Part shown: piece by piece, positions 6,785 through 22,224 of the stretch | Numbering within the stretch: the stretch's first letter is position 1 | Layout: each line of letters opens with the position of its first letter | Translations under genes and position numbers: made by a program | Sequence record: OQ427096.1 | Direction: 5' to 3' (one strand) | Length of the DNA stretch: 64,000 nt | The notes under the pieces: model-generated | Told to the model about the DNA's origin: nothing | What the model saw: the letters and a program-made list of their open reading frames with translations, nothing else | The model's database searches: none

Positions 6785-7080
6785 TTCGTGATTACACCAA
6801 CTTCCCGCACCGCGCAGGCGATGTCTATCGACTGGGTGAGTCGAACCTGTACTACATCCTGTCCATTGTCGAAGGCGACTCGGTCAATGACGACTGGCTC
6901 AAGTATGCCCTGATCAGCCTCGACGGCAACCGTTGGTGCGAGCCTATCGCACTTGACCGTTCTAATGAACGCCCTGCTGACGGTCTGACGGAAGAAGAGT
7001 TCACCACCCTTGTCAGCGCAGAGGACCGAGAAGCTTTCGTCAAGGCTTCGGGCAGGCTGGTTTTCGCCTCGCTCCACTGA
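6781..7080 (+). CDS. Hypothetical protein
   Basis: ATGA overlap with upstream stop. Confidence 0.7.
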   Translation: MIRDYTNFPHRAGDVYRLGESNLYYILSIVEGDSVNDDWLKYALISLDGNRWCEPIALDRSNERPADGLTEEEFTTLVSAEDREAFVKASGRLVFASLH

Positions 7081-7129
7081 CAGTCCAATTCGGACCAATG
7101 CTGGCCAATACTAGCATGTGAAGGTCAGC

Positions 7130-7184
7130 GTGAAATCTGACAGTCTCCGCAGCCCTATGACCGTCAGACTTGTTCAGATTTCAC
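7130..7184. repeat. 11-bp perfect inverted repeat
   Basis: GTGAAATCTGA (7130-7140) / TCAGATTTCAC (7174-7184). Confidence 0.9.
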
Positions 7185-7192
7185 CGGGTCTG

Positions 7193-7264
7193 ACGTAAGT
7201 GTCTGATTCTATTGGGGTTCTGGTTGTGAAGGGGTACCACGTAAGTGTCTGATTCTATTGGGGT
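7193..7264 (+). repeat. 26-bp direct repeat x2 containing the GTAAGTGTCTGATTC motif
   Basis: ACGTAAGTGTCTGATTCTATTGGGGT at 7193-7218 and 7239-7264. Confidence 0.95.
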
Positions 7265-7328
7265 CGTCACACATGAAGGTAGCGTTTAAAGCTCGTGACG
7301 GGCTGACAACGAAACTTTAACGAGTCTC

Positions 7329-7356
7329 TTCACAAGACCCGGAGTTCTGATACAGT
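7329..7356 (+). promoter_or_regulatory. Sigma70-type promoter
   Basis: TTCACA-N16-TACAGT with TG extension. Confidence 0.5.
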
Positions 7357-7435
7357 GTCTGACAATGATGTAGAGAGGACGTGATCACCTGTAGCATGAG
7401 TCTTGTCCTATTCCGGACTCTGTTGAGGAAATATC

Positions 7436-7723
7436 ATGGCTCTTTATGCAATCAAGCACATCCCTACCAATCGCTTCTACACTCCAAACACCTCGGGTGC
7501 TTTCCGCACCGGACGCAACTGGAGAAAGGGAAAAGGTGTATTGTTTACGGACAAGGCTGACGCGGTGAATGAAGTGGTAAGCCTGATCAACAAGCATCGT
7601 AACGGTGAAGAGCAGCTTCGCATTCGTACCTATGGCGGATACGATGTTGCACGCGCCGAGGATGCAGTTGGTGATGGATACATTCGTGATCGCGATTTCA
7701 GCGTAGTTGACGTGAACGTTTAA
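7436..7723 (+). CDS. Hypothetical protein
   Basis: GAGGA RBS, ORF 95 aa. Confidence 0.75.
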   Translation: MALYAIKHIPTNRFYTPNTSGAFRTGRNWRKGKGVLFTDKADAVNEVVSLINKHRNGEEQLRIRTYGGYDVARAEDAVGDGYIRDRDFSVVDVNV

Positions 7724-7783
7724 GTTTCCTCCGTGTGGCGCACTGGCCAAGGATGGCCACCTATTCTATTCCTTGAGAACACG

Positions 7784-9073
7784 ATGACAATTCTTTCGAT
7801 CCTCAATCAACTGGCTGCGACTTCGAGCCGCCTGGCCAAAGATGCAATTCTCAAGGACAACGCGTCCAATGAGACGCTCAAGCGAGTGTTCAAGCTCGCA
7901 TACGACAAGAAGATCCTCTTCTGGACTCGTACTATCCCAGATGAAGCCAGCTGGTCTGACGATCCTCCCTTCATCAATCTTGACGGTGCACTCGACCAGA
8001 TCGAGAAGAACATCTGCACACGCAAATTCACAGGCAATGCAGCTGCTGGCTTCCTGGCAAGCATGTTCTCCCAGCTCGATCGCGACGATGCAACGGTTCT
8101 CAAGCGAGTCATCCTGGGTGACCTGCGTGTCGGCGGAACTCGCGAAACGGCAAACCGTTGCTGGCCTGGCCTGATCGCGAAGCCATCCTTCATGCTCTGC
8201 TCGGCAGACTACGACGAAGAAGAGATCGGCTTCCCGGCGATCAGTCAGACCAAGGAAGACGGCGCCCGTTGTCGTCTGGAATGGGATGGCGAGACCGCAA
8301 CCCTGACCAGCCGTGCAGACAACGAAATTACGCATCATGCGACGTTCAACGATTGGGCGTCAAAGCACCTACAGCCCGGCGATAGCCTAGACGGTGAGCT
8401 GGTGTGTTTCCGTGACGGTAAGCGTTTGAGTCGTAAGGACTCCAACGGCTTTGTGAACAAGGCCATCAAGGGCACCATCAGTCCTGAGGAAGCAGAAATG
8501 CTGACCCTGGTTGCATGGGACCTTGAAGACAAGACTCTGCCCTACAACGAGCGTTTCGCCAAGGTCCAGTCTTTCGAAGGCAAGGTGCAGGCGATCGAGT
8601 CTCGTATCGTCCATTCGTATGAAGAAGCTCTGGCTCACTTCAAGGAAGCTCGTCGCGCTGGTCTGGAAGGCACCATCCTGAAGAAGTATGATGCTCTGTG
8701 GGAAGGCAAGCGTGTCAAGTTCCAGGCAAAGTTCAAGGCTGAGATCGAAGCAGAATTCCGTGTCGTTGGCTTTGACTATGGCAAGAAGGGGACCAAGAAC
8801 GAGAAGCGAGTTGGCGCACTCAAGGTCCAGTCCGAATGCGGGCAGGTTGCATGTGACGTTGGCATCTTCAAGGACTTCCCTGACACGATCCGCGATGACA
8901 TGCTGACGGATCTGCCGACCATCATCACTGTGCGATACAACGAGCGCATCACGTCTCGTGGTCGCGATACGCAGTCTCTGTTCCTGCCGCGCATGATTTC
9001 GATCCGCCTGGACAAGAACACCGCTGACACTCTGGATGACCTGATCAAGATCGAAGCGGCAACTCTGGAATGA
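7784..9073 (+). CDS. lig: ATP-dependent DNA ligase (T4 gp30-like)
   Basis: Motif I KEDGAR, EGTILK, FKAE, C-terminal OB fold SLFLPRM; start at MTILSIL. Confidence 0.95.
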   Translation: MTILSILNQLAATSSRLAKDAILKDNASNETLKRVFKLAYDKKILFWTRTIPDEASWSDDPPFINLDGALDQIEKNICTRKFTGNAAAGFLASMFSQLDRDDATVLKRVILGDLRVGGTRETANRCWPGLIAKPSFMLCSADYDEEEIGFPAISQTKEDGARCRLEWDGETATLTSRADNEITHHATFNDWASKHLQPGDSLDGELVCFRDGKRLSRKDSNGFVNKAIKGTISPEEAEMLTLVAWDLEDKTLPYNERFAKVQSFEGKVQAIESRIVHSYEEALAHFKEARRAGLEGTILKKYDALWEGKRVKFQAKFKAEIEAEFRVVGFDYGKKGTKNEKRVGALKVQSECGQVACDVGIFKDFPDTIRDDMLTDLPTIITVRYNERITSRGRDTQSLFLPRMISIRLDKNTADTLDDLIKIEAATLE

Positions 9074-9441
9074 TTGAGTCTTCCGTACAGACAAGAGAAG
9101 GCGATACTATCGGTTTCGCCTATGAGATTCGTCACGGTGAGGATTTCGATCCTCGCTGTGGCGTGTGTACCCAGTACACGGAATACGTGAACAAGATTCT
9201 CGGCGAGTGGCTGCCTGAGGCATTCATCGTTGAGGCAGATTGGTTGAACACGAATAGTTCTTCCGGTCTCAACATGCGCAAGATGTTGATCATCAAGAGT
9301 GGTCCTGAGCCGGTGCTGGAACGACTTCTGTTCTGGCTCACTTCCAACTTTGATGAGACTATCAAACTCGCATCAATTGATTCGATTGTGTTCCGTGAAC
9401 TAAGCACACAGAATGAGTACTCCTATACCATTCAGTATTGA
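9070..9441 (+). CDS. Hypothetical protein
   Basis: ATGA overlap with ligase. Confidence 0.65.
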   Translation: MIESSVQTREGDTIGFAYEIRHGEDFDPRCGVCTQYTEYVNKILGEWLPEAFIVEADWLNTNSSSGLNMRKMLIIKSGPEPVLERLLFWLTSNFDETIKLASIDSIVFRELSTQNEYSYTIQY

Positions 9442-9471
9442 CGCTGTAACCCATCAACCAATGGAGTCGTA

Positions 9472-9741
9472 ATGAGCATTACCTTTGAGCAGTTTGAAAA
9501 GCAGATTGAACCCATCCACAGCGCTTATTGTGCCAAGTACAATGAGCTTGCTGTTCTGCGACGCGAGTTCCAGAAGCTGGCAAATCAGATCAGCCTCGAC
9601 AATGTCGAAGATGAAGATGAGCGCGATGACCTGCATGAAGAAGTAAGCGACCGTCTTGCCGACCTGACCTACGATTTCGATCTGCAATGGGATGGTTTCG
9701 AGCAGGGTAACATCAACTTCTGGGTTCCGAGTACTTGCTAA
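9472..9741 (+). CDS. Acidic protein, W-x-P-S-x-C C-terminal family (1)
   Basis: Ends FWVPSTC*; coiled-coil N-terminus, D/E-rich middle. Confidence 0.85.
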   Translation: MSITFEQFEKQIEPIHSAYCAKYNELAVLRREFQKLANQISLDNVEDEDERDDLHEEVSDRLADLTYDFDLQWDGFEQGNINFWVPSTC

Positions 9742-9992
9742 TGACCACTGAAACCAAAACCTCTTTTGAAGCGTTCCATGAACAAGCCACGGACCTCTAT
9801 AGCCGCCTGGCCTTGATCGATCAGCTGTTCAAGGAAGCTGATGCTCTTGTCAGGAACGTCGATCGTTCTTCATTCACTGACGAGCAGCTCGATGAAGCCT
9901 ATGAATTGGCTCATGAAATTGGATACGCTGCCGGCTGGCAGTTTGACAGTTTCGGTGAAAATGGCGGCTACTGGCAGCCTTCGACCTGCTAA
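9741..9992 (+). CDS. Acidic protein, W-x-P-S-x-C family (2)
   Basis: Ends YWQPSTC*; TAATG coupling. Confidence 0.85.
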   Translation: MTTETKTSFEAFHEQATDLYSRLALIDQLFKEADALVRNVDRSSFTDEQLDEAYELAHEIGYAAGWQFDSFGENGGYWQPSTC

Positions 9993-10009
9993 TCATTCAA
10001 CCAAAGGAA

Positions 10010-10300
10010 ATGACAATGAGCAATCTTGATCTTGTGAACGCCGCCATTGAAGCCGGCAAGCCCCTGTACGACGAATACTACAAGCTGCGCAACGTTGCAG
10101 ACCAGAAGCTGCAGGAAATCCTGGGTCTGGTAGAGTCTCTCAAGCTGGACCCTGAGGACAAGGATGATGAAGAAGAGATCATCGAGATCATCACTGACCT
10201 GGGTAGCCGCTTTGGTCATGCGTGGGAAGGTCATTGGGACGTCGGCGGTCAATGGGACGTTGGTGACGAAATCCAGTACTGGGAACCGAGCACCTGCTAA
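10010..10300 (+). CDS. Acidic protein, W-x-P-S-x-C family (3)
   Basis: Ends YWEPSTC*. Confidence 0.85.
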   Translation: MTMSNLDLVNAAIEAGKPLYDEYYKLRNVADQKLQEILGLVESLKLDPEDKDDEEEIIEIITDLGSRFGHAWEGHWDVGGQWDVGDEIQYWEPSTC

Positions 10301-10605
10301 TGAGCAAGAATGAAGAATTGATGAAGGAACTTTATGAGCGGACAAAACCGCTCAGGAAAGAGTTTGACACACTCAAGTTCGCTCTGGATAAGAAGCGTTA
10401 TGAGATCGCAGGTCTCATCAACACTCTCGAATTCGAGGAGATCTCTGAGGATGATGAAGAAGCTTACGAGTCTCTGATTGACAACATCGACAGCTTCATG
10501 AGCTCCTTGGACCTGACTTGGACTGGCGGACGCTATTTCGAGTGGGGCGACAAGGATTGGAACCCAGGTGAAGAAATTCACTACTGGGAACCGAGTAACT
10601 GCTGA
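10300..10605 (+). CDS. Acidic protein, W-x-P-S-x-C family (4)
   Basis: Ends YWEPSNC*; TAATG coupling. Confidence 0.85.
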   Translation: MSKNEELMKELYERTKPLRKEFDTLKFALDKKRYEIAGLINTLEFEEISEDDEEAYESLIDNIDSFMSSLDLTWTGGRYFEWGDKDWNPGEEIHYWEPSNC

Positions 10606-11087
10606 TGCACGTAATCAAGGCACCTGTTCGTATTCGCGGTCTACCGCAGCGACCAACTGTCTTTCTGGCTGGGTCCATTGATATGGGCTCAGCTGTTGAA
10701 TGGCAGACTCGCCTTGAACGCGAACTAGAATACTTCCCAGGCACGATCTACAATCCTCGTCGTGATGACTGGGACAGTTCGTGGCAGCAGACAGATAGTG
10801 ATCCTCAGTTCCGAAGCCAGGTTGATTGGGAGCTTGATTTCATCGAGCACTCCAACCATGTTTTCATGTTCATCTCTAAGGACAGCAAGGCTCCGATTTC
10901 TCTTTTGGAGTTTGGCTACATCGTTGGTGGTGAACAGAACCCGGACAAGCTATTCATCTGTGTCGAGGAAGGCTTCTATCGCCGCGGTAATATTGAAGTT
11001 GTCTGTCGTAGACAAGACATCAAGCTATACAGTAACCTCGACGAGGCAATCGAGGCATTCAAAATCAAACTGGCAAGTGATCTATGA
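10605..11087 (+). CDS. Nucleoside 2-deoxyribosyltransferase-like protein (Nuc_deoxyri_tr2 type)
   Basis: VFLAGSI..WQ..NPRRDDW..QVDWEL..APISLLEFG. Confidence 0.9.
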   Translation: MHVIKAPVRIRGLPQRPTVFLAGSIDMGSAVEWQTRLERELEYFPGTIYNPRRDDWDSSWQQTDSDPQFRSQVDWELDFIEHSNHVFMFISKDSKAPISLLEFGYIVGGEQNPDKLFICVEEGFYRRGNIEVVCRRQDIKLYSNLDEAIEAFKIKLASDL

Positions 11088-11536
11088 CTGAATTGTTCTA
11101 TCCCTCGAATCTCTCCAAGCCTATGCCTGTATTCCTTGGCGGTAGCACTGCAAAGGGCGACTGGCAGAAGAAGGTTGTGGCTGCATTCGAAGACACGCAT
11201 ATTCCCTTCATCAACACCAGTCGCCCTGATTGGGACGTCGTTGAACCGAACCGTGAACAAAAGAACGAACACATTGCGTGGGAATTCAATTGGCAGAAGC
11301 GAGTGCTCAATCACTTCATCTGCATCCCAGCAGATGCGAAGTCTCCTACAGTGATGCTGGAACTGGGACTTGCGATTTCGTGTCATGGTAACGCTGTGGT
11401 GTTCATTGATCCGGAGTACTCGCATTTCCACAATGCTCGTATCGCTTGTGAGACCTATGGTGTTCGTGTGTTCACCGACTTCGATGAAGCGGTAGAAAAG
11501 TTAAAGGACTTGTTCCTAACTTCTCGCCTATTCTGA
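11084..11536 (+). CDS. Second nucleoside 2-deoxyribosyltransferase-like paralog
   Basis: VFLGGS..WQ..RPDW..WEF..SPTVMLELG. Confidence 0.8.
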   Translation: MTELFYPSNLSKPMPVFLGGSTAKGDWQKKVVAAFEDTHIPFINTSRPDWDVVEPNREQKNEHIAWEFNWQKRVLNHFICIPADAKSPTVMLELGLAISCHGNAVVFIDPEYSHFHNARIACETYGVRVFTDFDEAVEKLKDLFLTSRLF

Positions 11537-11558
11537 GAAAAACGGCATAAATACTCAT

Positions 11559-11678
11559 ATGAAAACAATTCTCCTCACATCGAAAAATTGGCATCAGGTT
11601 GCAGCTCTAGCTGTCAAGCCCGCCGACGAACGATATGTGGCTGGATTTGATTTGAATACTGGGTACGGAATGAGTTGA
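11559..11678 (+). CDS. Small hypothetical protein (39 aa)
   Basis: ORF between CATAAATA (11546-11553) and a strong terminator. Confidence 0.45.
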   Translation: MKTILLTSKNWHQVAALAVKPADERYVAGFDLNTGYGMS

Positions 11679-11706
11679 AAGATTGATTTTCAACTTGGCT
11701 TTCTGG

Positions 11707-11737
11707 ACCCAGGAACTGAAAAGTTTCTGGGTTTTTA
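11707..11737 (+). terminator. Rho-independent terminator
   Basis: ACCCAGGAACT-GAAA-AGTTTCTGGGT followed by TTTT. Confidence 0.85.
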
Positions 11738-11950
11738 CTTAGTGGTGCGAAAAGGTTGATAAGAAAGGCTGTCCATGTAGCATATGGTTTCAGGACTTTT
11801 AAACATTGACGCGCCGAGGAGCTTATGTGAAGAACTTGTACTTGACGGTAACAAACTTTCTGTTAGGCTTTGGCACGTTGCAGCCGTTTTGGGCGACGAG
11901 TTACCTACTGATGAAGTTAGGAACCGTTTCAGGAAACATGTAAGAAAAGG

Positions 11951-11978
11951 TTGTGTAGAAAACAGTTTGATGTAAACT
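11951..11978 (+). promoter_or_regulatory. Promoter of the tRNA operon
   Basis: TTGTGT-N16-TAAACT; near-identical block repeated at 13849. Confidence 0.7.
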
Positions 11979-12051
11979 ACGCAACATGAAGTAACAGGCG
12001 CGCAGCAACGAAGCTGACGCGACGTTCTTTAAAAACAAAGATTCAAGTTAT

Positions 12052-12127
12052 ACGTCGTTAGTTCAATTGGCAGAACACCAGCCTCCAAAGCTGGGTGTTG
12101 AGGGTTCGAGTCCTTCACGGCGTGCCA
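12052..12127 (+). tRNA. tRNA-Trp(CCA)
   Basis: Cloverleaf, loop CT-CCA-AA, encoded CCA. Confidence 0.95.
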
Positions 12128-12135
12128 AGTTTTAT

Positions 12136-12211
12136 GTCTGGGTAGCAAAACGGCAAATGCGCTGGCCTGCAAAGCCATGAGGTGCGAGTTCGATTCTCGC
12201 CTCAGACTCCA
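12136..12211 (+). tRNA. tRNA-Cys(GCA)
   Basis: Cloverleaf, U73, CCA. Confidence 0.93.
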
Positions 12212-12221
12212 AGTTTTATAT

Positions 12222-12299
12222 CTGTGTGTAGCTCAGTCTGGTTAGAGTACTCGCTTTGGAAGCGAGTGGTCGTTGGTTCGAATCCAACCACGCAGACCA
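12222..12299 (+). tRNA. tRNA-Pro(TGG)
   Basis: Cloverleaf, C1-G72, A73. Confidence 0.95.
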
Positions 12300-12307
12300 A
12301 GTTTTAT

Positions 12308-12401
12308 CCCGTTGTATCCCCAGACGCTACGAACGTCTACAAAGGTAACTGGAGTGGTGTCAAAAGCACTGATGCAGGTTCGAATCCTGTCGACGGGTCC
12401 A
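12308..12401 (+). tRNA. Non-canonical tRNA-Arg(ACG)-like RNA, rearranged D/anticodon region
   Basis: Acceptor CCCGTTG/CGACGGG+T+CCA and T-arm GGTTCGAATCC intact; AGACG-CTACGAA-CGTCT hairpin follows the acceptor directly. Confidence 0.7.
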
Positions 12402-12496
12402 AACAGTTCTCGGACTTAAACCGAGTGGTGGAGGATAAACTGAGAAATCAGTGAATCCCTTGACGAGATGGAGTCATTAACTCGATCGAGAATTTT

Positions 12497-12571
12497 GGGC
12501 TGCTCGTATAATGAGTATTACACCTGCCTTGCACGCAGGGAATCGGAGTTTGATTCTCCGGCGGTCCACCA
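12497..12571 (+). tRNA. tRNA-Ala(TGC), atypical
   Basis: G3-U70, loop CT-TGC-AC, T-loop TTTGATT. Confidence 0.85.
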
Positions 12572-12577
12572 AAACTT

Positions 12578-12653
12578 GGGGCCTTAGCTCAGATGGGAGA
12601 GCAGGTGCTTTGCAAGCATCAGGTCATCGGTTCGATCCCGATAGGCTCCACCA
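12578..12653 (+). tRNA. tRNA-Ala(TGC)
   Basis: Canonical, G3-U70. Confidence 0.96.
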
Positions 12654-12664
12654 AGTTTAGATAT

Positions 12665-12749
12665 GCCCTGTTGGTGGAATTGGTAGACACGCATCCTTGA
12701 GGTGGATGTGCTGAAAGGCGTGAGGGTTCGAGTCCCTTGCAGGGTACCA
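12665..12749 (+). tRNA. tRNA-Leu(GAG)
   Basis: Type II cloverleaf. Confidence 0.95.
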
Positions 12750-12776
12750 AACAAGACTGTTCAATCAGTCGAACGA

Positions 12777-12855
12777 GTTGGAAGGTCGGGTTCGAATCCC
12801 GAAGTGATGACGTCCGGATTAGGTCATCATTTGGTGTAGTGGGCAGCACGCCGAT
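12777..12855 (+). ncRNA. Circularly permuted tRNA-like module (Y RNA/YrlA-like)
   Basis: Order is T-arm (TCGGG-TTCGAAT-CCCGA), loop-closed 9-bp acceptor-like stem, D-arm, closing stem GTTGG/CCGAT. Confidence 0.6.
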
Positions 12856-13063
12856 ACATTAAAAGGTTGCGCAGAAGTGTGCTTCATTTAGACTGTGAAC
12901 ACAGTCAGGCAAGTCGATCAAAAGACGCGCCGACAAGCCCGAAGCGAGTTCTTCGGCTAAGAAGGAAAGACATCGTTTCCTACTTGTAACGACAAGTCCT
13001 TAGAGGATGAAGTCTCCGTTAGTCGGACGCCTGAGAGTGGCGAAAAGGATTCTTCGGTATTTC

Positions 13064-13137
13064 GGGTTGCAAGCATTAAGGTGATGCAGGAGGCTTTTAA
13101 CCTTCAGAACAGGGATCGTTACCCTGGCGACCCACCA
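13064..13137 (+). tRNA. tRNA-Lys(TTT)
   Basis: Loop CT-TTT-AA; T-loop ATCGTTA. Confidence 0.88.
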
Positions 13138-13145
13138 AGTTTTAA

Positions 13146-13221
13146 GCCCCGTTGGCTCAATTGGCAGAGCAGCTGTTTTGTAATCAGCAGGTTGGGAGTT
13201 CGAGTCTCTCACGGGGCACCA
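13146..13221 (+). tRNA. tRNA-Thr(TGT)
   Basis: Cloverleaf, CCA. Confidence 0.93.
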
Positions 13222-13229
13222 AGTTTTAA

Positions 13230-13303
13230 GCGGGTATGGTATAGTGGTTGTGCCCTAGCCTTCCAAGCTAGAGAGACGAGTTCGATCCTCGTTACCCGCT
13301 CCA
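13230..13303 (+). tRNA. tRNA-Gly(TCC)
   Basis: Cloverleaf, U73. Confidence 0.95.
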
Positions 13304-13314
13304 AGTTTTACGAT

Positions 13315-13392
13315 GCATCTGTCTGCTAATTGGAATAGGCAACGATCCTTTCAAGTTCGGGAATGCGGGTTCGAGTCCCGTCAGATGCTCCA
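13315..13392 (+). tRNA. tRNA-Glu(TTC), atypical
   Basis: Loop CT-TTC-AA, one stem mismatch, U73. Confidence 0.82.
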
Positions 13393-13398
13393 AGTTTT

Positions 13399-13473
13399 GC
13401 TCCACTCGTCTAGTGGCTAGGATGACACCCTTTCAAGGTGTAGAAGAGGGATCGAAACCCTCGTGGAGTGCCA
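13399..13473 (+). tRNA. tRNA-Glu(TTC)
   Basis: Cloverleaf, G73. Confidence 0.93.
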
Positions 13474-13479
13474 AATTAT

Positions 13480-13556
13480 GCGTCTGTAGCTCAACAGGAT
13501 AGAGCATCCGGCTTCTACCCGGATGGCTGAGGGTTCGAGTCCTTCCAGGCGCGCCA
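13480..13556 (+). tRNA. tRNA-Arg(TCT)
   Basis: Cloverleaf, CCA. Confidence 0.95.
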
Positions 13557-13566
13557 AGTTTCAAAT

Positions 13567-13652
13567 GGATAGGTGGGCGAGTGGTTTATGCCAGCAGACT
13601 GTAAATCTGCCGCTTAATTGCATCGTTGGTTCGAATCCAACCCTATCCACCA
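13567..13652 (+). tRNA. tRNA-Tyr(GTA)
   Basis: Canonical type II. Confidence 0.96.
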
Positions 13653-13659
13653 AGTTTAT

Positions 13660-13750
13660 GTGTCTGCTGTCGGGTTGGAGGACGGCACCGGGCTGTAACC
13701 CCGGATCCTCAAAAGGGACGTAGTAGGTTCGAATCCTACCAGGCACACCA
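13660..13750 (+). tRNA. tRNA-Tyr(GTA), atypical D-arm
   Basis: No U8; extended D-stem CTGTC/GACGG; long variable arm. Confidence 0.8.
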
Positions 13751-13758
13751 AGTTATAT

Positions 13759-13834
13759 GGTTCCTTAGCTCAGTTGGTAGAGCAACGCTTTTACAAGGCG
13801 AAGGTCGTGGGTTCAAGTCCCTCAGGAACTACCA
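13759..13834 (+). tRNA. tRNA-Val(TAC)
   Basis: Cloverleaf, CCA. Confidence 0.92.
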
Positions 13835-13848
13835 AACGTTGAAACAGG

Positions 13849-13876
13849 TTGTGTAGAAAACAGCTTGGTATACAAT
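13849..13876 (+). promoter_or_regulatory. Promoter of the large ncRNA
   Basis: TTGTGT-N16-TACAAT; paralog of the 11951 block. Confidence 0.75.
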
Positions 13877-13884
13877 AAGCAACA

Positions 13885-14795
13885 TGAAGCAACGTCCAGA
13901 CCACTGAAGAGTCGCCGGGACGATAAACAAAGGCACGAAACGTCGAGAGGCACAAAACATTAGCCTCGTGAGACGTCTGGTCTAGCAACTCAATTGTCGA
14001 AAGGCGATTGTTTAGGAATACGGTACAGTGATGTGCCTAATGGATTAAACGCCCACAAGCGGTCCGCCAGAGATGGTTCCTCTAGAACAAGTCGACATAG
14101 TGCAGCCGAAAGGTTGGCGTCTAGTATCCCTAGGCGATATGTGGAGGCTCAGTGAGACACGAGATTCAGGTCCAATGCCGAATGGTGAGGATTTGATCGT
14201 TTAGCGACGGTAGTGTTTCGGCTTAGCGGCAACTGACTCCAAGGACATTGAATCGGCAGGTACGTAGTTCAAGCCTTAGCGGGTAAGGGCGAGTATCAGG
14301 TCAGACGGACTAATGTTCGTACTGTATCACTCGGACGTAGGCTTAGCGGCTGAAACGAGAGGAGGTCGGGTAAGAAGCTGTCGCCCAAAAGGCTATGGAC
14401 TTACGAACCTGCTCGACCTTAGTGGGCTTTCAACTTTGACGGTTAATCAAAACTACGAAAAACGCAAAGTCAGGTTCGGTCGTAAGTGAAAGTGGCTTAA
14501 TCGTTGACACGAAAGTGAATCAACGCAATTTGAGGCTCGCAAGGCTGATGATTGTCTATCAGGAAGTGCACCTAAGAGGAAGCCCCTCTGAATGGCTCGC
14601 AAGGTCAAGGGAAACGGGAAGGTAGAGTAGCTTACGATGACAGAGGAAACGCCACCTCTTTAAACTAGGCAGCCATGACGGTTAACAATGATGCATCGAA
14701 AGATGGTTGTTGTGGAAAAGTTGGGAAGGGCTCCGCAAGAGCTGATAATCCAAACGAATGAATCGTCTCGTCAGACTGTATTCTCAGGTCGACAC
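13885..14795 (+). ncRNA. Large structured ncRNA, GOLLD-like
   Basis: ~0.9 kb without a convincing ORF inside a tRNA array; long helix 14399-14411/14471-14487; repeated CTTAGCGG and GGCTCGCAAGG hairpins; 3' GTATTCTCAG. Confidence 0.7.
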
Positions 14796-14858
14796 TTTGT
14801 TTCAAGGAGTTGTATTCCTCAAACGCTTCAATTGAAGTTTTTGCGAAATGCAATTTTT

Positions 14859-14936
14859 GGTCCCATAGTTTACGATTGGTTAGAACTCCCGCCTCTCAAG
14901 CGGAAGAATCGGGTTCGACTCCCGATGGGACTGCCA
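14859..14936 (+). tRNA. tRNA-Glu(CTC)
   Basis: Cloverleaf, G73. Confidence 0.93.
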
Positions 14937-14944
14937 AGTTTTAT

Positions 14945-15148
14945 ACGCGTGTAGCTCAGTGGCGACGATAAGTTCAAAGACGGTAGGCATACTGTCACGC
15001 AGAGCGAGTCGAGGATTGGCGATACGACTGTGACGATACGAAGGTGGAGCTCGAGATCCTAGCTCCGACAATAACGGTACGGTCAACATTCGAGAGCGCC
15101 GGGTAGATAACCCGGAGGTCAGTGGTTCGATTCCATTTTCGCGTACCA
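14945..15148 (+). tRNA. tRNA-Ile(GAT)-like RNA with ~125-nt insertion in the D-loop
   Basis: D-stem GCTC (14954-57)/GAGC (15094-97) separated by 136 nt; anticodon arm CCGGG-TAGATAA-CCCGG; T-arm; ACCA. Confidence 0.72.
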
Positions 15149-15176
15149 TATAAGTAGAGTAGTACAAAAGTTTTAT

Positions 15177-15253
15177 CCGGGTTTAGCTCAGTCTGGCAGA
15201 GCACGCCGTTTGGGGCGGTGAGGTCGTAGGTTCGAACCCTGCAACCCGGACCA
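15177..15253 (+). tRNA. tRNA-Pro(TGG), second copy
   Basis: Cloverleaf, C1-G72, A73. Confidence 0.93.
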
Positions 15254-15267
15254 ATTAGAGAAGTGTT

Positions 15268-15507
15268 ATGGAAACTTTAGAAACGAAAGTGACACGTCTA
15301 GGCAATGGGCTTTATGGATGCAGGATCATCAGGTCAGCTGACAAGAAGCCAATTGTTGAATTAAGAGTTGAAAAGTCTCAGATTAGGAATGCTATGTTTG
15401 ATATGCTCCGAACTCTAGACAAGCTGGGATATGATAGTCCTATGGCACATGCTTCGCGACATCGCGGTAAGGCTTGTGTCACAGACTCGAAATATATCTG
15501 GCATTGA
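15268..15507 (+). CDS. Hypothetical protein within tRNA array
   Basis: ORF fills the gap between two tRNAs. Confidence 0.7.
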   Translation: METLETKVTRLGNGLYGCRIIRSADKKPIVELRVEKSQIRNAMFDMLRTLDKLGYDSPMAHASRHRGKACVTDSKYIWH

Positions 15508-15512
15508 TTTAT

Positions 15513-15598
15513 TCTGGACGCGCCTAATGGGGAGGCACCGGGCTGTTAACCCGGCGATAGAAATATCCGACACGGTTCGATTCCGTGGTCCAGAGCCA
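15513..15598 (+). tRNA. tRNA-Asn(GTT) with long variable arm
   Basis: Loop CT-GTT-AA; GATA-GAAA-TATC extra arm; G73. Confidence 0.85.
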
Positions 15599-15604
15599 AG
15601 ATAT

Positions 15605-15680
15605 GGATTACAGGCCAACTGGTGTAGGCATGCAGCTGTTAACTGCAGATTGTTGAGTTCGATTCTCAAGTAGTCCTCCA
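15605..15680 (+). tRNA. tRNA-Asn(GTT), U73
   Basis: Cloverleaf with atypical discriminator. Confidence 0.85.
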
Positions 15681-15688
15681 AAACAAAC

Positions 15689-15763
15689 GGTCTATTAGTC
15701 TATGGGTTAAGATGCTGGCCTGTCACGCCGGCGTAACGAGTTCGAGCCTCGTATAGACCGCCA
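15689..15763 (+). tRNA. tRNA-Asp(GTC)
   Basis: Cloverleaf, G73. Confidence 0.93.
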
Positions 15764-15770
15764 AACAAAT

Positions 15771-15850
15771 CGGGATAGGGACTGCTAGGTGTGGTCGCCG
15801 GACTGTCAATCCGGAGAGTCAGACGGATTCGAATTCCGTTATCCCGACCA
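15771..15850 (+). tRNA. tRNA-Asp(GTC), atypical (C1-G72, A73)
   Basis: Loop CT-GTC-AA; Pro-like acceptor end. Confidence 0.82.
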
Positions 15851-15857
15851 AGTCAGT

Positions 15858-15930
15858 GGCGTCCTCTTCGGAGATAGTGAAGTGAGGTAAAGTACTCAAT
15901 GCTCACGGAACGAATAATCAGACGCCTCCA
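15858..15930 (+). ncRNA. CCA-terminated mini-RNA 1
   Basis: GGCGTC/GACGCC stem + T + CCA; internal hairpins; no T-loop. Confidence 0.5.
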
Positions 15931-15943
15931 AAATTGAGAATGA

Positions 15944-16017
15944 TGCGCGGTCGTATAACGGCAGTATACTGGGCTCATAACCCGGAGATGGAGGTTCGAT
16001 TCCTCCCTGCGCTACCA
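15944..16017 (+). tRNA. Initiator tRNA-fMet(CAT)
   Basis: 1:72 mismatch, three G-C pairs in anticodon stem. Confidence 0.9.
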
Positions 16018-16042
16018 AATGGTCAGGCTCATGACCTAACTC

Positions 16043-16100
16043 TGTGAGTATGATAAGCTTTCATGAGGCTGTCGGGACTTAACTGTTCAACTCACAACCA
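16043..16100 (+). ncRNA. CCA-terminated mini-RNA 2
   Basis: Perfect 7-bp TGTGAGT/ACTCACA + A + CCA; 58 nt. Confidence 0.55.
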
Positions 16101-16106
16101 ATCAAC

Positions 16107-16182
16107 GGGTCCGAAGCTCAAATGGCAGAGCAACTGGTTCTTACCCAGTAGGAAGTCGGTTCGATCCCGACCGGACCCACCA
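16107..16182 (+). tRNA. tRNA-Lys(CTT)
   Basis: Cloverleaf, CCA. Confidence 0.93.
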
Positions 16183-16188
16183 AACTAT

Positions 16189-16228
16189 GCGCTCGAGCAG
16201 CCGAAAGGAAGTAGCCGAGGGCGCACCA
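16189..16228 (+). ncRNA. CCA-terminated mini-RNA 3 (40-nt minihelix)
   Basis: GCGCTC/GGGCGC + A + CCA, capped by CC-GAAA-GG. Confidence 0.5.
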
Positions 16229-16234
16229 AACAAT

Positions 16235-16323
16235 GGACTCGTTCCCGTAGTTGGTCGAACGGAGCGGACTCTTAATCCGACGGCGAAAGCCCATCGCAGG
16301 TTCGAATCCTGCCGGGTCCACCA
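16235..16323 (+). tRNA. tRNA-Lys(CTT) with long variable arm
   Basis: Loop CT-CTT-AA; GGC-GAAA-GCC extra arm; Tyr/Leu-like D-arm. Confidence 0.85.
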
Positions 16324-16336
16324 AAATGAGATAGAT

Positions 16337-16615
16337 ATGCCGAAGTACAATTTCAAGTGTAGCGAATGTGAGCACCGCGGTGATGTCTGGACCGGCGATA
16401 CTGAAAAGGTCGACGTGGACTACAAAGACGTAGAGTGCCCTGGTTGTGGAAAAAAGACCTACAACTATGCTCCTTGGGATTCAGGTGCTACATCTCAGTC
16501 ATGGGGCCATGTGAAGCCTACAACGCTAGGAAGGCAGAAGGCTCCTCAGGATTTTAGAAACTTCCTGACACAGATTAAGAAGGCACATCCAGGTTCAACA
16601 ATCCGCGATCATTGA
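16337..16615 (+). CDS. FmdB-like zinc-ribbon protein
   Basis: MPKYNFKCSEC..CPGCG. Confidence 0.8.
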   Translation: MPKYNFKCSECEHRGDVWTGDTEKVDVDYKDVECPGCGKKTYNYAPWDSGATSQSWGHVKPTTLGRQKAPQDFRNFLTQIKKAHPGSTIRDH

Positions 16616-16631
16616 TCAAAAAGGTGTTGCG

Positions 16632-16841
16632 ATGTACGTGTATCAAACTTATTATGACTACACCGAAACATATTGTCATCCGAATCCTGAGCAATGGTCG
16701 GAAGAAAGGAAAGTTCTGTGTACTACTCTAGACGAGAGCTTGGCGCAAGAAGTTGCAGCCAAGCACAACGCTGAGAGCAAGGCACACAGGTGGTATAAAG
16801 AATATGCGAGAGTTGAGAAGTTTGAATTGACCTCGCGATAA
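16632..16841 (+). CDS. Hypothetical protein
   Basis: AAGG RBS, ORF 69 aa. Confidence 0.65.
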   Translation: MYVYQTYYDYTETYCHPNPEQWSEERKVLCTTLDESLAQEVAAKHNAESKAHRWYKEYARVEKFELTSR

Positions 16842-16849
16842 AGAATCGC

Positions 16850-16924
16850 TGTTCAGTAGCTCAGTTGGTAGAGCGGCTGCCATTTAGGGCGGCAGGTCGT
16901 GGGTTCGAGACCCACTTGGACGTT
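16850..16924 (+). pseudogene. tRNA-like element with 8-nt anticodon loop, no encoded CCA
   Basis: Canonical D- and T-arms; loop CATTTAGG; wobble-rich acceptor. Confidence 0.65.
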
Positions 16925-17002
16925 AAGCGCTAGGGCGAATTTAAAGTACTCACATACTAGTCCGAGACAGTATCGCCCGGATCCTATAATTGTCAGCAGG
17001 TA

Positions 17003-17482
17003 ATGGTCATGCAGAAGAAAATTGACGTGAAAGCAGTCGAGGCGTTCATGCAGACGCAGAGCCCTGAGACAAAAGTTTATCTTGGAGCAGACTCCGAGAA
17101 GGTAAAAATCAATGGTAAGATGTACGCGGATTACACCGTCGTCATCGTTGTTCACATTGATGGTTGTAAGGGTTGTAAGGTATTCGCCGAGACAACTCGT
17201 GAGGAAGACTACGATAAGGACCCTTCAAAGCCGTTCACTCGGATGATGAAGGAAGCTGAAAAGGTAGCCGAGCTTCACGATCGTTTCAAGGACACCTTCT
17301 ACGACTTCGAGGTTAGTATTCACCTCGACATCAACCCGAAGAAGACGGCAGGTTCAAGTATCGCAATGGAAGCGGCACGTGGTTACGTCAAGGCGATGAC
17401 CATGGTTGATCCTCACTTGAAGCCTGTAGCATTTGCTGGTTCTTATGCTGCGGATCGCGCTAAAGAACTTGGTATGTGCTAA
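17003..17482 (+). CDS. RNase H-like protein, YkuK family
   Basis: VYLGADS..RMMKEAE..IHLDINP..KP.AFAGSYAAD. Confidence 0.88.
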   Translation: MVMQKKIDVKAVEAFMQTQSPETKVYLGADSEKVKINGKMYADYTVVIVVHIDGCKGCKVFAETTREEDYDKDPSKPFTRMMKEAEKVAELHDRFKDTFYDFEVSIHLDINPKKTAGSSIAMEAARGYVKAMTMVDPHLKPVAFAGSYAADRAKELGMC

Positions 17483-17489
17483 GAGATAT

Positions 17490-17575
17490 GCCCCTGTAGG
17501 CGAATTGGTATAGCTACTGGCCTTAGAAGCCAGCGCCGAAAGGCATTGACGGTTCGAGTCCGTCCAGGGGTACCA
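17490..17575 (+). tRNA. tRNA-Leu(TAG)
   Basis: Type II cloverleaf. Confidence 0.95.
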
Positions 17576-17582
17576 AATATGT

Positions 17583-17658
17583 GTCGGAGTAGCTCAGTTG
17601 GTAGAGCGGTAGCTTGAAAAGTTACGCGTCGCAGGTTCGATTCCTGTCTCCGATACCA
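17583..17658 (+). tRNA. tRNA-Phe(GAA)
   Basis: Canonical. Confidence 0.95.
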
Positions 17659-17661
17659 AAA

Positions 17662-17697
17662 CACCGTCACTCAGGTCCCTCGGTGCAAAATAAGGGA
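17662..17697 (+). ncRNA. H-type pseudoknot 1
   Basis: S1 CACCG/CGGTG, S2 TCCCT/AGGGA, no L2, A-rich L3. Confidence 0.55.
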
Positions 17698-17721
17698 ATA
17701 CTCAGGAGAGGAGATTGTAGT

Positions 17722-17907
17722 ATGAAGTTGCCTTCGCGTTTTCAAATCGGTGATAAGGTTCTCGCTGGTCGTCTTGATGGTGGGAGCAAAGGTGAAGTAA
17801 TTGGTGTACACTTCAACCGATACAAAGTATCGTATGATGTGGTCGACGAGTTGACCCAACGTACAAAGAAGCACCTCAGTGAACGGGTTCATCCTGTCAC
17901 AGAGTAA
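17722..17907 (+). CDS. Small SH3-like hypothetical protein
   Basis: GGAG RBS; FQIGDKV..GEVIGV. Confidence 0.7.
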   Translation: MKLPSRFQIGDKVLAGRLDGGSKGEVIGVHFNRYKVSYDVVDELTQRTKKHLSERVHPVTE

Positions 17908-17927
17908 ATACAGATATAAGACAATTT

Positions 17928-18002
17928 GCATCGTTAGCTGAGATGGATTAGCGCTTGCCTGAAGAGCTCGAGAGGTTGGTTCGATACCAACACGATGCAC
18001 CA
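17928..18002 (+). tRNA. tRNA-Phe(GAA), atypical
   Basis: Two mismatches in anticodon stem; CCA. Confidence 0.78.
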
Positions 18003-18017
18003 AACAAAGGAACGTGA

Positions 18018-18266
18018 ATGAGCTTTAAGCCGGTTAATACTTTCGTCATCGTAAAGCGTAGGGAAGAAGATACAACGAGTCAGGGAGGCATCATCATCTC
18101 TGGATCAGTTGATCATAACCTCTTCACTGTTGTGGCCAAGAATGATCTTGTGACATTCGTTGAGCCCGGTGATACGGTAGTAATCAACATTCGCGAAGCA
18201 GCTGAAATCGACGATGTACATTACGCAGTTGATGCAAAGCACATCTTCACCAAGGTTTCTAAGTAA
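18018..18266 (+). CDS. groES: Co-chaperonin GroES-like (gp31-like)
   Basis: FKPVNTFVIVKR..T.SQGGIII..VEPGDTV. Confidence 0.8.
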   Translation: MSFKPVNTFVIVKRREEDTTSQGGIIISGSVDHNLFTVVAKNDLVTFVEPGDTVVINIREAAEIDDVHYAVDAKHIFTKVSK

Positions 18267-18275
18267 GACAGTTTT

Positions 18276-18352
18276 GCCCAGGTGACGGAATTGGTATACG
18301 TACTGTCCTCAGAAGGCAGGTTTTGAGGGTTCGAGTCCCTCTCTGGGTACCA
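18276..18352 (+). tRNA. tRNA-Leu(CAG), short variable loop
   Basis: Leu-type D-loop, 5-nt variable region, A73. Confidence 0.88.
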
Positions 18353-18362
18353 AAGTTTCAGT

Positions 18363-18440
18363 GTTCCACGTGTCGGAATTGGTAGACGAGCCAGACTGTG
18401 AATCTGGAGTTTGCGGGTTCGAGCCCCGTCGTGGTCCCCA
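18363..18440 (+). tRNA. tRNA-His(GTG)
   Basis: G-1:C73; mismatches at pairs 1-2. Confidence 0.85.
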
Positions 18441-18449
18441 AAGTTGATC

Positions 18450-18476
18450 AGGTGATTCGCCACCTTAGAGTGCGAA
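18450..18476 (+). ncRNA. H-type pseudoknot 2
   Basis: S1 AGGTG/CACCT, 1-nt L1, S2 TTCGC/GCGAA. Confidence 0.6.
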
Positions 18477-18486
18477 ATTGAAATAT

Positions 18487-18561
18487 TGCCTGTTAGCTCA
18501 GTGGTAGAGCAATCGCCCGATAAGCGATAGGTCGTCAGTTCGATCCTGACACGGGCAACCA
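18487..18561 (+). tRNA. tRNA-Ile(GAT), C33
   Basis: Loop CC-GAT-AA. Confidence 0.92.
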
Positions 18562-18565
18562 ATAA

Positions 18566-18639
18566 GCCTTCATAGCTCAAAGGTAGAGCACTCGCCCGAT
18601 AAGCGATAGACCTAGGATCGTTACCTAGTGAAGGCACCA
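18566..18639 (+). tRNA. tRNA-Ile(GAT), C33, second copy
   Basis: Loop CC-GAT-AA; T-loop ATCGTTA. Confidence 0.88.
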
Positions 18640-18641
18640 AA

Positions 18642-18832
18642 CCGTTGACGAAACAGCGTAAGGGCGCTAAAGTAGTACGCAACAAGGTATTCTAGTTGGA
18701 GCCTTGCAAAGAGCCGGACTGTTAAAGGTTGCGGCGAGACTAGATTGGTAGCTTAATTAGCTTACGGTGCATCATATGTTGCTAGGGTATGATGACTCAG
18801 AAGCCTTCGGGAACCCTTAACTTAGCTACAAA
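18642..18832 (+). ncRNA. Putative structured ncRNA
   Basis: TCTAGT/ACTAGA, GTAGCT/AGCTAC and CATCATA/TATGATG helices; no ORF. Confidence 0.45.
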
Positions 18833-18838
18833 TTCTAT

Positions 18839-18916
18839 AGCCCAGTCGTTTAGTTGGTCCAAGACGCCGTCCTTTGAAGTCGGTCATCGTAGGTTCGAAT
18901 CCTACCTGGGTTGCCA
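18839..18916 (+). tRNA. tRNA-Gln(TTG)
   Basis: Cloverleaf, G73. Confidence 0.92.
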
Positions 18917-18923
18917 AGTTTGA

Positions 18924-18997
18924 TGCCTCTTAGTTCAATGGTAGAATGTCGCTCTCTGAAAGCGAAGACAACGGATCGATACCGTTAGAGGCTGCCA
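18924..18997 (+). tRNA. tRNA-Gln(CTG)
   Basis: Cloverleaf, G73. Confidence 0.92.
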
Positions 18998-19002
18998 AAT
19001 AT

Positions 19003-19295
19003 GGGACTGTGCCGGATAGCTCCCGGACATTATGATGTGAGTAGGTTAGCCTGACTAGGGTGTTTGGTGCATCAGGCACCATCTGAAAGACTAATCCAAA
19101 GTTGATTGATGCAGGTCCCGCCAGATGCAAAAGTAAGACTAGCCGTTCAAGTCGGTAAGCACATGGTGTGCACCATGCCGCGTTAGGTGTGGAGGAGGCG
19201 TTCGAATCGTCGGTGGTTGCCAGGCCCCTATAGACACTGCTTGCAAGAGGGATTTAAAGTAACCAAATGAGGTCGCTCCTCGCGGAACAGTTCCC
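19003..19295 (+). ncRNA. Putative ~290-nt ncRNA containing a tRNA-like domain (19137-19222)
   Basis: Ends GGGACTGT/ACAGTTCCC pair; internal D-loop, fully paired CATGGT-GTGC-ACCATG arm, TTCGAAT loop, GCCA. Confidence 0.45.
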
Positions 19296-19310
19296 TCGGT
19301 ACTATTCTAT

Positions 19311-19422
19311 GAAGGTTGTAGCTCAAAGGTAGAGCGCCGGGTGTCGGACCCGGGTCAAAGAGTATGAAGTTCGCGCGAACTGTCTGCTCAGGTGCAGGAG
19401 TCGAAGCCTGCCAGCCTTCCCA
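19311..19422 (+). tRNA. Non-canonical tRNA (TCG) with ~40-nt variable arm
   Basis: Acceptor AAGGTTG/CAGCCTT, G-1:C73, loop TG-TCG-GA, 8-nt T-loop, CCA. Confidence 0.65.
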
Positions 19423-19442
19423 CTAATTGATAATTAGAGACG

Positions 19443-19727
19443 ATGAGACAGTTTAACCTTCGAGGTAAGAAGACATATCGTCCTGGCTGTGGTTGTTGCG
19501 TTGTTGAAAACTTCAAGCCAGAAATCATTGACAAGATTCACGCATACGAAATGCGTAATCCAGATGAATTCGCTCTCACAGCAGACGATTTCGATTGTGT
19601 AGAAGATTTTCTCATTTATATTGATGTTCCCGTTGACCAAGTTTGTTATGATAGTTCACACTGCGCTCCCTTCGAAGGCAAGGAAGAAAGCCAAGAAGAA
19701 GGTTGTACCGACAAGGACGCCAGTTAA
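19443..19727 (+). CDS. Hypothetical protein (CGCC motif)
   Basis: ORF after the tRNA-like element; overlaps next ORF by 80 nt. Confidence 0.5.
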   Translation: MRQFNLRGKKTYRPGCGCCVVENFKPEIIDKIHAYEMRNPDEFALTADDFDCVEDFLIYIDVPVDQVCYDSSHCAPFEGKEESQEEGCTDKDAS

Positions 19728-19971: not shown

Positions 19972-19974
19972 CCT

Positions 19975-20519: not shown

Positions 20520-20526
20520 AAATATT

Positions 20527-20618
20527 GGAGCGTAACTCAGCCAGGTGGCTGACGCTGTTTGCTAAACAGTTGGGACCCTATGAACGGGTCTGGGGATCGA
20601 GACCTCTGCGCTCCGCCA
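20527..20618 (+). tRNA. tRNA-Ser(GCT)
   Basis: Type II, G73. Confidence 0.93.
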
Positions 20619-20632
20619 ATTTGGATTTGATC

Positions 20633-21510: not shown

Positions 21511-21512
21511 TC

Positions 21513-22213: not shown

Positions 22214-22224
22214 ATATCACGTAA

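Follow-up and report, generated by a model that had tools for sequence, protein, structure and literature searches.

A 64,000-nucleotide stretch of Xanthomonas phage X1 (OQ427096.1, bases 124001-188000) was analyzed, and this whole stretch is referred to as the window; a window position equals the record position minus 124000. Seven small acidic proteins encoded in the window were found to share a short C-terminal tail ending in cysteine. They belong to a tail-defined class that is widely distributed, in which the tail is modular and the genes are tightly and specifically coupled to the gene of one conserved, enzyme-like candidate partner protein composed of the domains DUF7277 and DUF7275. 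We propose, with moderate confidence, that the class and the DUF7277+DUF7275 protein form a two-component module, in which the tail is the common handle for this partner and the bodies preceding the tail are variable effectors. X1 is a 200-kb T4-like myovirus with nucleotide-metabolism and 7-deazaguanine-pathway genes, and bases 9000-12000 of the window matched Xanthomonas phage X1 at 100% and phage BUDD (ON758385.1) at 88%.

Four tandem and three dispersed open reading frames (ORFs) of the window end in W-x-[PS]-S-x(1-3)-C-stop, with coordinates and tails as given in an earlier reading made from the sequence alone (the sequence-only reading). All seven are on the plus strand and are annotated in OQ427096 as coding sequences of hypothetical proteins. 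The tandem array consists of gene 1 (9472-9741, 89 aa, net charge -14, tail FWVPSTC-stop), gene 2 (9741-9992, 83 aa, net charge -11, tail YWQPSTC-stop), gene 3 (10016-10300, 94 aa, net charge -16, tail YWEPSTC-stop), and gene 4 (10300-10605, 101 aa, net charge -14, tail YWEPSNC-stop). Stop codons overlap the following starts (TAATG or TGATG) from gene 1 to gene 2, from gene 3 to gene 4, and from gene 4 to the first of two nucleoside 2-deoxyribosyltransferase-like (NDT-like) genes, and the 23-nt spacer between genes 2 and 3 carries the ribosome-binding site of gene 3 itself. The dispersed members are located at 21513-21737 (74 aa, net charge -13, tail WVSSSDRC-stop), 29956-30408 (150 aa, net charge -12, tail FWLPSNFGC-stop), and 37583-37801 (72 aa, net charge -10, tail WDSSSC-stop). 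The second of these genes overlaps the 3' end of a metallophosphatase gene, and its protein had no family match and was linked to the class by its tail alone; the third sits two genes downstream of a polynucleotide kinase gene and gave marginal profile matches only. The acidity noted earlier was borne out in all seven proteins (net charge -10 to -16, pI 4.1-4.5), and the terminal Cys is the sole Cys in five of them. Directly after the 150-aa tail protein, a 73-aa gene (30420-30641) matched phrog_19073 (E 7e-10) and phrog_14410, both of unknown function.

Among window ORFs of at least 30 residues, the pattern W..S.{1,3}C stood at the end of 7 of 579 on the plus strand versus 0 of 630 on the minus strand, and the same pattern occurred internally only twice in 28,449 residues. 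At a background of about 2e-4 per ORF, approximately 0.25 matches were expected (P ~1e-8), and chance cannot account for the tail pattern in the window. The conserved Ser of the array is written by both AGY and TCN codons. In 178 relatives, Ser was encoded by TCN in 120 and by AGY in 58, Cys by TGC in 138 and by TGT in 40, and the stop codon was TAA in 117, TGA in 54, and TAG in 7. The mixed AGY and TCN codons indicated that the constraint on the tail acts on the protein, not on the DNA. An explanation of the Cys-stop end at the DNA level, by overlap with a ribosome-binding site or start, was discarded, since a downstream ATG was overlapped in only 23 of the 178 tails and the codons were mixed.

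The candidate partner emerged from gene neighborhoods. The X1 partner gene (record 116670-117617, about 6.4 kb before the window) encodes a protein of 315 aa that matched DUF7277 (PF23942, E 2e-14) and DUF7275 (PF23940, E 1.5e-65); proteins of this kind (~310 residues) form phrog_2141, function unknown. Four more X1 tail genes lie outside the window directly after the partner gene (record 117607-117852, 117852-118043, 118549-118728, and 118739-118963), the cluster starting within the last codons of the partner gene, and Ala precedes Ser in the tails of all four. With the rest of the record read piecewise, X1 had a total of 11 tail-bearing members; all 11 have BUDD orthologs with the tail, and their bodies drift. 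X1 and BUDD each carry a single DUF7277+DUF7275 gene followed directly by four tail genes. For the seven tail genes of the window, the partner is present at the genome level and not adjacent. Besides X1 and BUDD, the pairing was seen in PPSC2, AB1I1M-1, ZZ1, RB69, phiWec179, Mx1, and the metagenomic phage contig L023, and it spans RB69, Phapecoctavirus, Otagovirus, Acinetobacter T4-like phages, and Myxococcus phage Mx1. The large genes beside the tail genes were assigned to DUF7277+DUF7275 by Pfam in PPSC2, AB1I1M-1, ZZ1, and L023, and as partner homologues by tblastn and alignment in RB69, phiWec179, and Mx1. Three tail ORFs were located upstream of ORF134c in RB69, three tail ORFs were found in phiWec179, and one in Mx1; in L023 four tail genes, including one of the array type, come after the partner homologue.

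The coupling was quantified in the 80 best-scoring of 225 IMG/VR loci with a DUF7275 gene, a sample that includes related phages. One to six same-strand tail ORFs were carried by 73 of the 80 partner loci. Tail ORFs accounted for 178 of 7,273 ORFs on the partner strand versus 2 of 9,447 on the opposite strand, and most of them ended 0-1.5 kb upstream of the partner, many within 25 nt of its start. Two of the seven loci without a tail member had no upstream flank, and one had a variant tail. When the neighborhood ORFs of the 80 loci were clustered, DUF7275 was found in 79 loci, the small proteins in 65, and the next family in 8. Since no third family reached beyond 8 of 80 loci, the pairing is not a by-product of inherited synteny. 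The sequence-only reading had suggested delivery to one shared partner. A single candidate was indeed found in the DUF7277+DUF7275 protein, and the NDT-like genes coupled to the array were not supported in that role. By tblastn, the partner gene was present in 733 of 50,697 phage records, including RB69, Phapecoctavirus, Mx1, and phages of Aeromonas and Vibrio; more distant matches came from Bacillus phage G and actinophages. A scan of 185,579 bacterial and archaeal genomes with a single peptide pattern returned only five partner loci, each from a metagenome bin or an unnamed isolate, and tail ORFs stood upstream of the partner in four. The module looks phage-specific, as far as a scan with a single peptide pattern can tell.

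Strict IMG/VR members (n=170) had a median length of 87 aa and a median charge of -8, with 94% net negative. The invariant Ser was preceded by Ser in 48%, Pro in 18%, and Ala in 13%, Gly preceded the Trp in 37%, and the spacing from Ser to Cys was three residues in 70% and one residue in 29%; a single Cys was present in 54% (91/170). By sequence, class membership covered these 170 strict ORFs and about 13 with the Cys not last, in which 1-3 residues follow it (about 13 of about 185 IMG/VR members, ~7%). The Cys was missing in two IMG/VR ORFs and in ZZ1p0083, a clear homologue ending in Ser, and the BUDD ortholog of array gene 4 ends in Cys-Tyr. The earlier statement that Cys is always the last residue was thus correct for the seven window proteins and too strong for a minority of their relatives. 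Some members contained two Trp..Ser..Cys units, one internal and one terminal (X1 record 117607-117852, IMG/VR L081 and L101, and genome bin L114), which indicates that the unit does not strictly require a free C-terminus. Near the DUF7275 homologue of Bacillus phage G, no ORF with the strict tail pattern was found; gp204 (L032:4610-4963), directly upstream of this homologue, encodes a very acidic protein of 117 aa ending in Ser-Ser-Ser-Trp, possibly a Gram-positive form of the tail with its residues rearranged. A 43-aa ORF antisense to the DUF7275 gene (X1 record 116813-116944, minus strand) has the tail pattern at its end as well and is retained in BUDD; it was taken as a chance match kept through the overlap with a conserved gene.

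The sequence-only reading could name no family for these proteins. No characterized family was matched, and part of the class turned out to be already grouped in phrog_899 (PHROGs v4, function unknown). The 21513-21737 protein aligned at positions 150-221 of the 221 positions of phrog_899 (E 1.3e-6). Two X1 genes outside the window also matched (118549, E 2e-4; 118739, E 0.03), and the three matches cover the last ~75 positions and reach the profile end. Bit scores were 71 for PPSC2 orf81, 54 for AB1I1M-1 WJJ54713, and 45 for ZZ1p0083, whereas the array genes, 29956-30408, and 37583-37801 were not matched at E <= 1. The profile and the tail class are not the same, in that PPSC2 orf79 bears the tail yet falls in phrog_23943, and the phrog_899 entry records neither function, tail, nor partner. 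Searches of the tail proteins against Pfam, NCBIfam, and PADLOC gave nothing above noise. As the sequence-only reading had anticipated, the motif corresponded to no characterized domain in these collections, in PDB by sequence, or by Foldseek.

Further members were collected by tblastn and by profile search. With a 59-aa X1 member as the tblastn query, matches extended to T4-like Acinetobacter phages and to Pseudomonas phage PPSC2, in which five tail-bearing genes lie inside 4 kb and several score well on phrog_899. A tblastn match in Acinetobacter phage TPWB-05 fell inside a 727-aa protein and was discarded as a chance match. With the window and related sequences as query, a profile search of 1.84 billion representatives returned 31 matches at E <= 0.001. 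New proteins (50%-identity clusters) of 87-119 aa with the array architecture made up 25 of them, and all 25 end in Trp-x-x-Ser-x-Cys-stop; the metagenomic contigs of these array-type relatives carry tandem arrays of 2-4. Other searches were less productive: with array gene 4 as the query, tblastn went no further than X1 and BUDD; none of 13 pattern matches from a scan of IMG/VR with the back-translated array alignment was confirmed; and word-indexed protein searches recovered close relatives only.

The relationship between bodies and tail was examined by profile comparison. The claim that only the tail is conserved did not apply within the array, whose four genes are true paralogs with 24-29% identity across their whole length, and it did apply between subfamilies. 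An array-only profile failed to detect the other X1 members. A profile of 115 IMG/VR members encoded beside DUF7275 genes significantly matched 21513, 118549, and 118739, and it matched array gene 2 (E 0.09) and 37583 (E 0.24) marginally. When the array family was aligned to the canonical family with hhalign, only the 14 tail columns aligned (82% probability), and nothing aligned with the tails cut off. The tail is therefore the sole unifier between the subfamilies. Both subfamilies share one array beside the DUF7275 gene in L023.

The two-component module would work as follows. Its small members, as we would define the class, are strongly acidic and mostly helical (median ~87 aa) and end in Trp, two residues, Ser, a further one or three residues, and Cys, with the stop codon usually next and at most three residues in between. 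The tail would be a handle fitting the DUF7275 protein, either by serving as its substrate, with modification at the invariant Ser or Cys, or as a ligand of the conserved pocket of the enzyme, in which case binding may regulate the enzyme. The fast-diverging acidic bodies would be the variable working parts and would each act on a target of its own, for which host proteins of defence or of nucleic-acid handling are the most plausible candidates. The four-gene array of the window would be a derived subfamily that came to lie beside the DNA ligase in the X1 clade, and its coupling to the NDT-like genes would be local. The physical interaction, the modification, and the role of the bodies are what we infer from the genetic coupling.

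The sequence of the partner was compatible with an enzyme. Across 9 homologues 27-45% identical to the X1 protein, 36 columns were invariant, including G-S and D-x-D near the N-terminus, His-Asp..His, Cys, and several Arg, Glu, and Lys residues, with the His-Asp..His and the Cys belonging to DUF7275. The motif G[SG]..D-x-D was present in 66 of 74 full-length IMG/VR partner homologues, and the G-S...D-x-D motif of DUF7277 appears nucleotidyltransferase-like. No significant match to a nucleotidyltransferase family was obtained, searches of PDB with the single sequence and with a profile gave zero matches, and the catalog entries for DUF7277 and DUF7275 assign no function to either domain. A more specific form of the two-component module was considered, in which the tail would be the recognition or acceptor site for an undescribed post-translational modification by the DUF7277+DUF7275 protein, for example nucleotidylylation of the Ser or chemistry at the terminal Cys, arming the diversifying acidic effectors against host defence or nucleic-acid enzymes. 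We advance this form tentatively and judge it rather improbable as it stands.

Structure prediction bore on another explanation, that the tail is an intrinsic structural or metal element. The long N-terminal helix would oligomerize, the two to four terminal Cys residues thus brought together would form a disulfide, Zn, or Fe-S site, the Trp would belong to the small fold, and DUF7275 would be co-regulated or act indirectly. AlphaFold2 modeled array protein 3 from a 37-sequence alignment with a predicted local distance difference test score (pLDDT) of 91.8 and a predicted template modeling score (pTM) of 0.72, as a long helix (3-40), an acidic loop, and a second helix (52-65). In this confident model, the tail Tyr-Trp (88-89) was bridged to residues 69-70, as expected of a structural element. 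The last four residues had lower confidence than the core, which is consistent with an exposed end and counts in favor of the two-component module. The single Cys of 91 of the 170 strict members could form no site alone and might do so in an oligomer, and the second internal Trp..Ser..Cys unit of some members also favors an element of structure. Prediction for the canonical member P0016 from a shallow alignment yielded a confident N-terminal helix only. A Foldseek search with the array protein 3 model gave no PDB or BFVD match at E <= 0.001, and a PDB sequence search with the family profile gave only designed and coiled-coil helical proteins, i.e. composition noise. The structural explanation leaves it unexplained that the tail genes track one enzyme-like gene across unrelated phages, and that the same tail is shared by bodies without detectable homology. 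We therefore regard it as unlikely.

Ordinary divergence of paralogs that have no shared partner was weighed similarly. The tail would be the slowest-evolving remnant of these proteins, and adjacency to the partner would reflect a shared hypervariable early region. Full-length paralogy within the array, a single BLAST-linked cluster holding 146 neighborhood ORFs, and gene surroundings dense in small hypothetical genes (as around the X1 tail genes, where these are densely packed) fit this explanation. It is hard to reconcile with a pair kept in 65-79 of the 80 loci when other families reached at most 8, with a tail that is nearly invariant while the bodies have diverged past profile-profile detection, and with the same-strand, tight, often overlapping placement typical of operonic partners. 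Its probability appeared low, on a par with that of the structural element.

Peptide maturation was given still less weight. The proteins would be precursors resembling ribosomally synthesized and post-translationally modified peptides, the body acting as leader and the Trp..Ser..Cys end as a core that is cross-linked or decarboxylated (lanthionine- or AviCys-like) and released. AviCys formation in epidermin-type lanthipeptides uses a terminal Cys preceded by Ser or Thr. The tail has this arrangement of Ser or Thr before a terminal Cys, and several precursor-like genes stand in tandem beside one enzyme-like gene. However, conservation was the reverse of that in a precursor, with variable bodies and a constant core. 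Genes for a dehydratase, cyclase, decarboxylase of the homo-oligomeric flavin-containing Cys decarboxylase type, radical-SAM enzyme, protease, or exporter were not conserved neighbors in the 80 loci, and no such maturation gene was annotated near the X1 tail genes. Moreover, ~7% of the members extend past the Cys, and the array-type protein was predicted to be a compact domain that includes the tail Trp. Maturation of this kind is improbable.

The array sits in a local setting that was considered separately. An ATP-dependent DNA ligase gene (7784-9073, plus strand) and a gene for a 123-aa protein with a C-x-x-C pair (9070-9441, plus strand) precede it. Homologues of the C-x-x-C protein hold the same slot in metagenomic contigs L019, L025, and L028, and the order of ligase, C-x-x-C protein, and tail array recurs in contigs whose ligases are ~50% identical to that of X1; this order is clade-level synteny. 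Downstream, the two NDT-like genes (10605-11087 and 11084-11536, both plus strand) matched PF15891 with E 9e-29 (100.4 bits) and E 4e-14 (53.2 bits), against a gathering cut-off of 30 bits. They are paralogous, overlap by 4 bases, and both belong to phrog_30579; homologues occur in Stenotrophomonas phage DLP_6, Ralstonia phage RsoM2USA, Caulobacter and Brevundimonas jumbo phages, and Lak megaphages. The coupling of the array to two NDT-like genes, as described in the sequence-only reading, was confirmed at the level of the stop/start overlap and of the family. As functional context it failed: the association was found only in X1 and BUDD, the NDT loci of DLP_6 and RsoM2USA have no tail genes, and other tail loci have no NDT-like gene. 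Docking of the acidic proteins by their tails onto the two coupled enzymes, for which the overlap of array gene 4 with NDT-like gene 1 and its conservation in BUDD speak, is very improbable, in that no tail genes lie within 6 kb of the DLP_6 and RsoM2USA homologues, no NDT-like gene was present at the other tail loci examined (PPSC2, RB69, phiWec179, Mx1, Acinetobacter phages, and IMG/VR), and 7 of the 11 X1 members are nowhere near the NDT genes.

Several findings weigh against the two-component module itself. The window array and the dispersed members are 15-45 kb from the single DUF7275 gene of X1, and no DUF7275 gene was present in the few kb covered by the array-type contigs L019 and L025. 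A recognizable tail gene was missing beside DUF7275 at four IMG/VR loci and in Bacillus phage G. Related phages among the 80 IMG/VR loci bring the number of independent lineages below 80, and gene adjacency can mean co-regulation only. The label of nucleotidyltransferase comes from a short motif, some GenBank annotations, and one weak Pfam hint. Packing of the tail Trp on the helical hairpin in the array-type model suggests that the tail is more than a free peptide.

The module with the DUF7277+DUF7275 protein was compared to known systems. In HEPN-MNT modules, a minimal nucleotidyltransferase AMPylates its partner protein, and the X1-type pairing may resemble them in mode of action, in that a protein with a putative small Pol-beta-like nucleotidyltransferase motif would be paired genetically with a small partner that could be nucleotidylylated on a hydroxyl residue. 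It differs in that the X1-type partners are multiple, acidic, tail-defined, and phage-encoded, and no MNT, NTP_transf_2, or HEPN match was found in Pfam, NCBIfam, or PADLOC. The C-terminal tip of SSB and clamp-binding tails are likewise short conserved C-terminal motifs with an aromatic anchor on unrelated proteins. Their sequence is different and the roles are reversed, with many tail carriers and one presumed reader here, and the tail Trp is predicted to be partly buried in array protein 3. The DNA mimics Ocr, Arn, and ArdA are similar as small, very acidic (pI ~4.1-4.5), helical phage proteins of the early region. No similarity to Ocr, ArdA, or Arn was detected by the PDB family-profile search or by Foldseek with the pLDDT-92 model, and we know of no mimic of this type that carries a Trp-Ser-Cys tail. 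Literature searches by PHROG and Pfam identifiers, RB69 ORF names, and description returned no account of the module, no paper mentioning DUF7277 or DUF7275 was found, and the X1 genome paper does not discuss the tail genes. No known kind of system was matched, the component families are already catalogued as uncharacterized, and the mechanism we propose is inferred.

Other features of the surroundings were recorded. In L023, a Gad2-family gene (PF26128; L023:1660-2574) is ~1.8 kb upstream of the DUF7275 gene and the four-gene tail array. A protein of 1,395 aa annotated as ADP-ribosyltransferase is encoded outside the window (X1 record 95507-99694); NadV, NMNAT, and NAD synthase genes lie between it and the DUF7275 cluster, and the tail-gene loci of Acinetobacter phages likewise adjoin NAD-salvage genes. 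Genes annotated as QueD (6-pyruvoyl-tetrahydropterin synthase), GTP cyclohydrolase I, QueE-like, and queuine tRNA-ribosyltransferase (window 48197-48703 and, outside the window, record 69405-75509) suggest 7-deazaguanine modification of X1 DNA. ARAGORN identified 37 tRNA genes in the window, within 12052-23337, several of them duplicated and one (16850-16923) with an aberrant two-base anticodon call. Genes for tRNA-Trp, tRNA-Cys, and tRNA-Pro come first after the array and NDT genes; they correspond to residues of the array tails, probably by coincidence. In a promoter and terminator scan of 7000-12200, sites were no more numerous than in shuffled sequence.

Many of the small early genes of large lytic phages have no known function, and more than 200 such genes from many phage lineages are joined here into one class, marked by a six-to-eight-residue C-terminal tail and paired with a single conserved enzyme-like protein. 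Since the module is present in tractable phages (RB69, Phapecoctavirus, and Otagovirus) and the partner in 733 phage records, the question of what DUF7275 does to the tail or with it can be tested directly. A tail serving for modification or docking would, if confirmed, represent a new principle by which phages deploy variable families of effectors, and the proposed module, if true, would give a function to two Pfam DUFs and two PHROGs. Should the reading by post-translational modification be true, it would describe a phage-specific system of one enzyme and many tagged effectors in more than 700 sequenced phages, including RB69.

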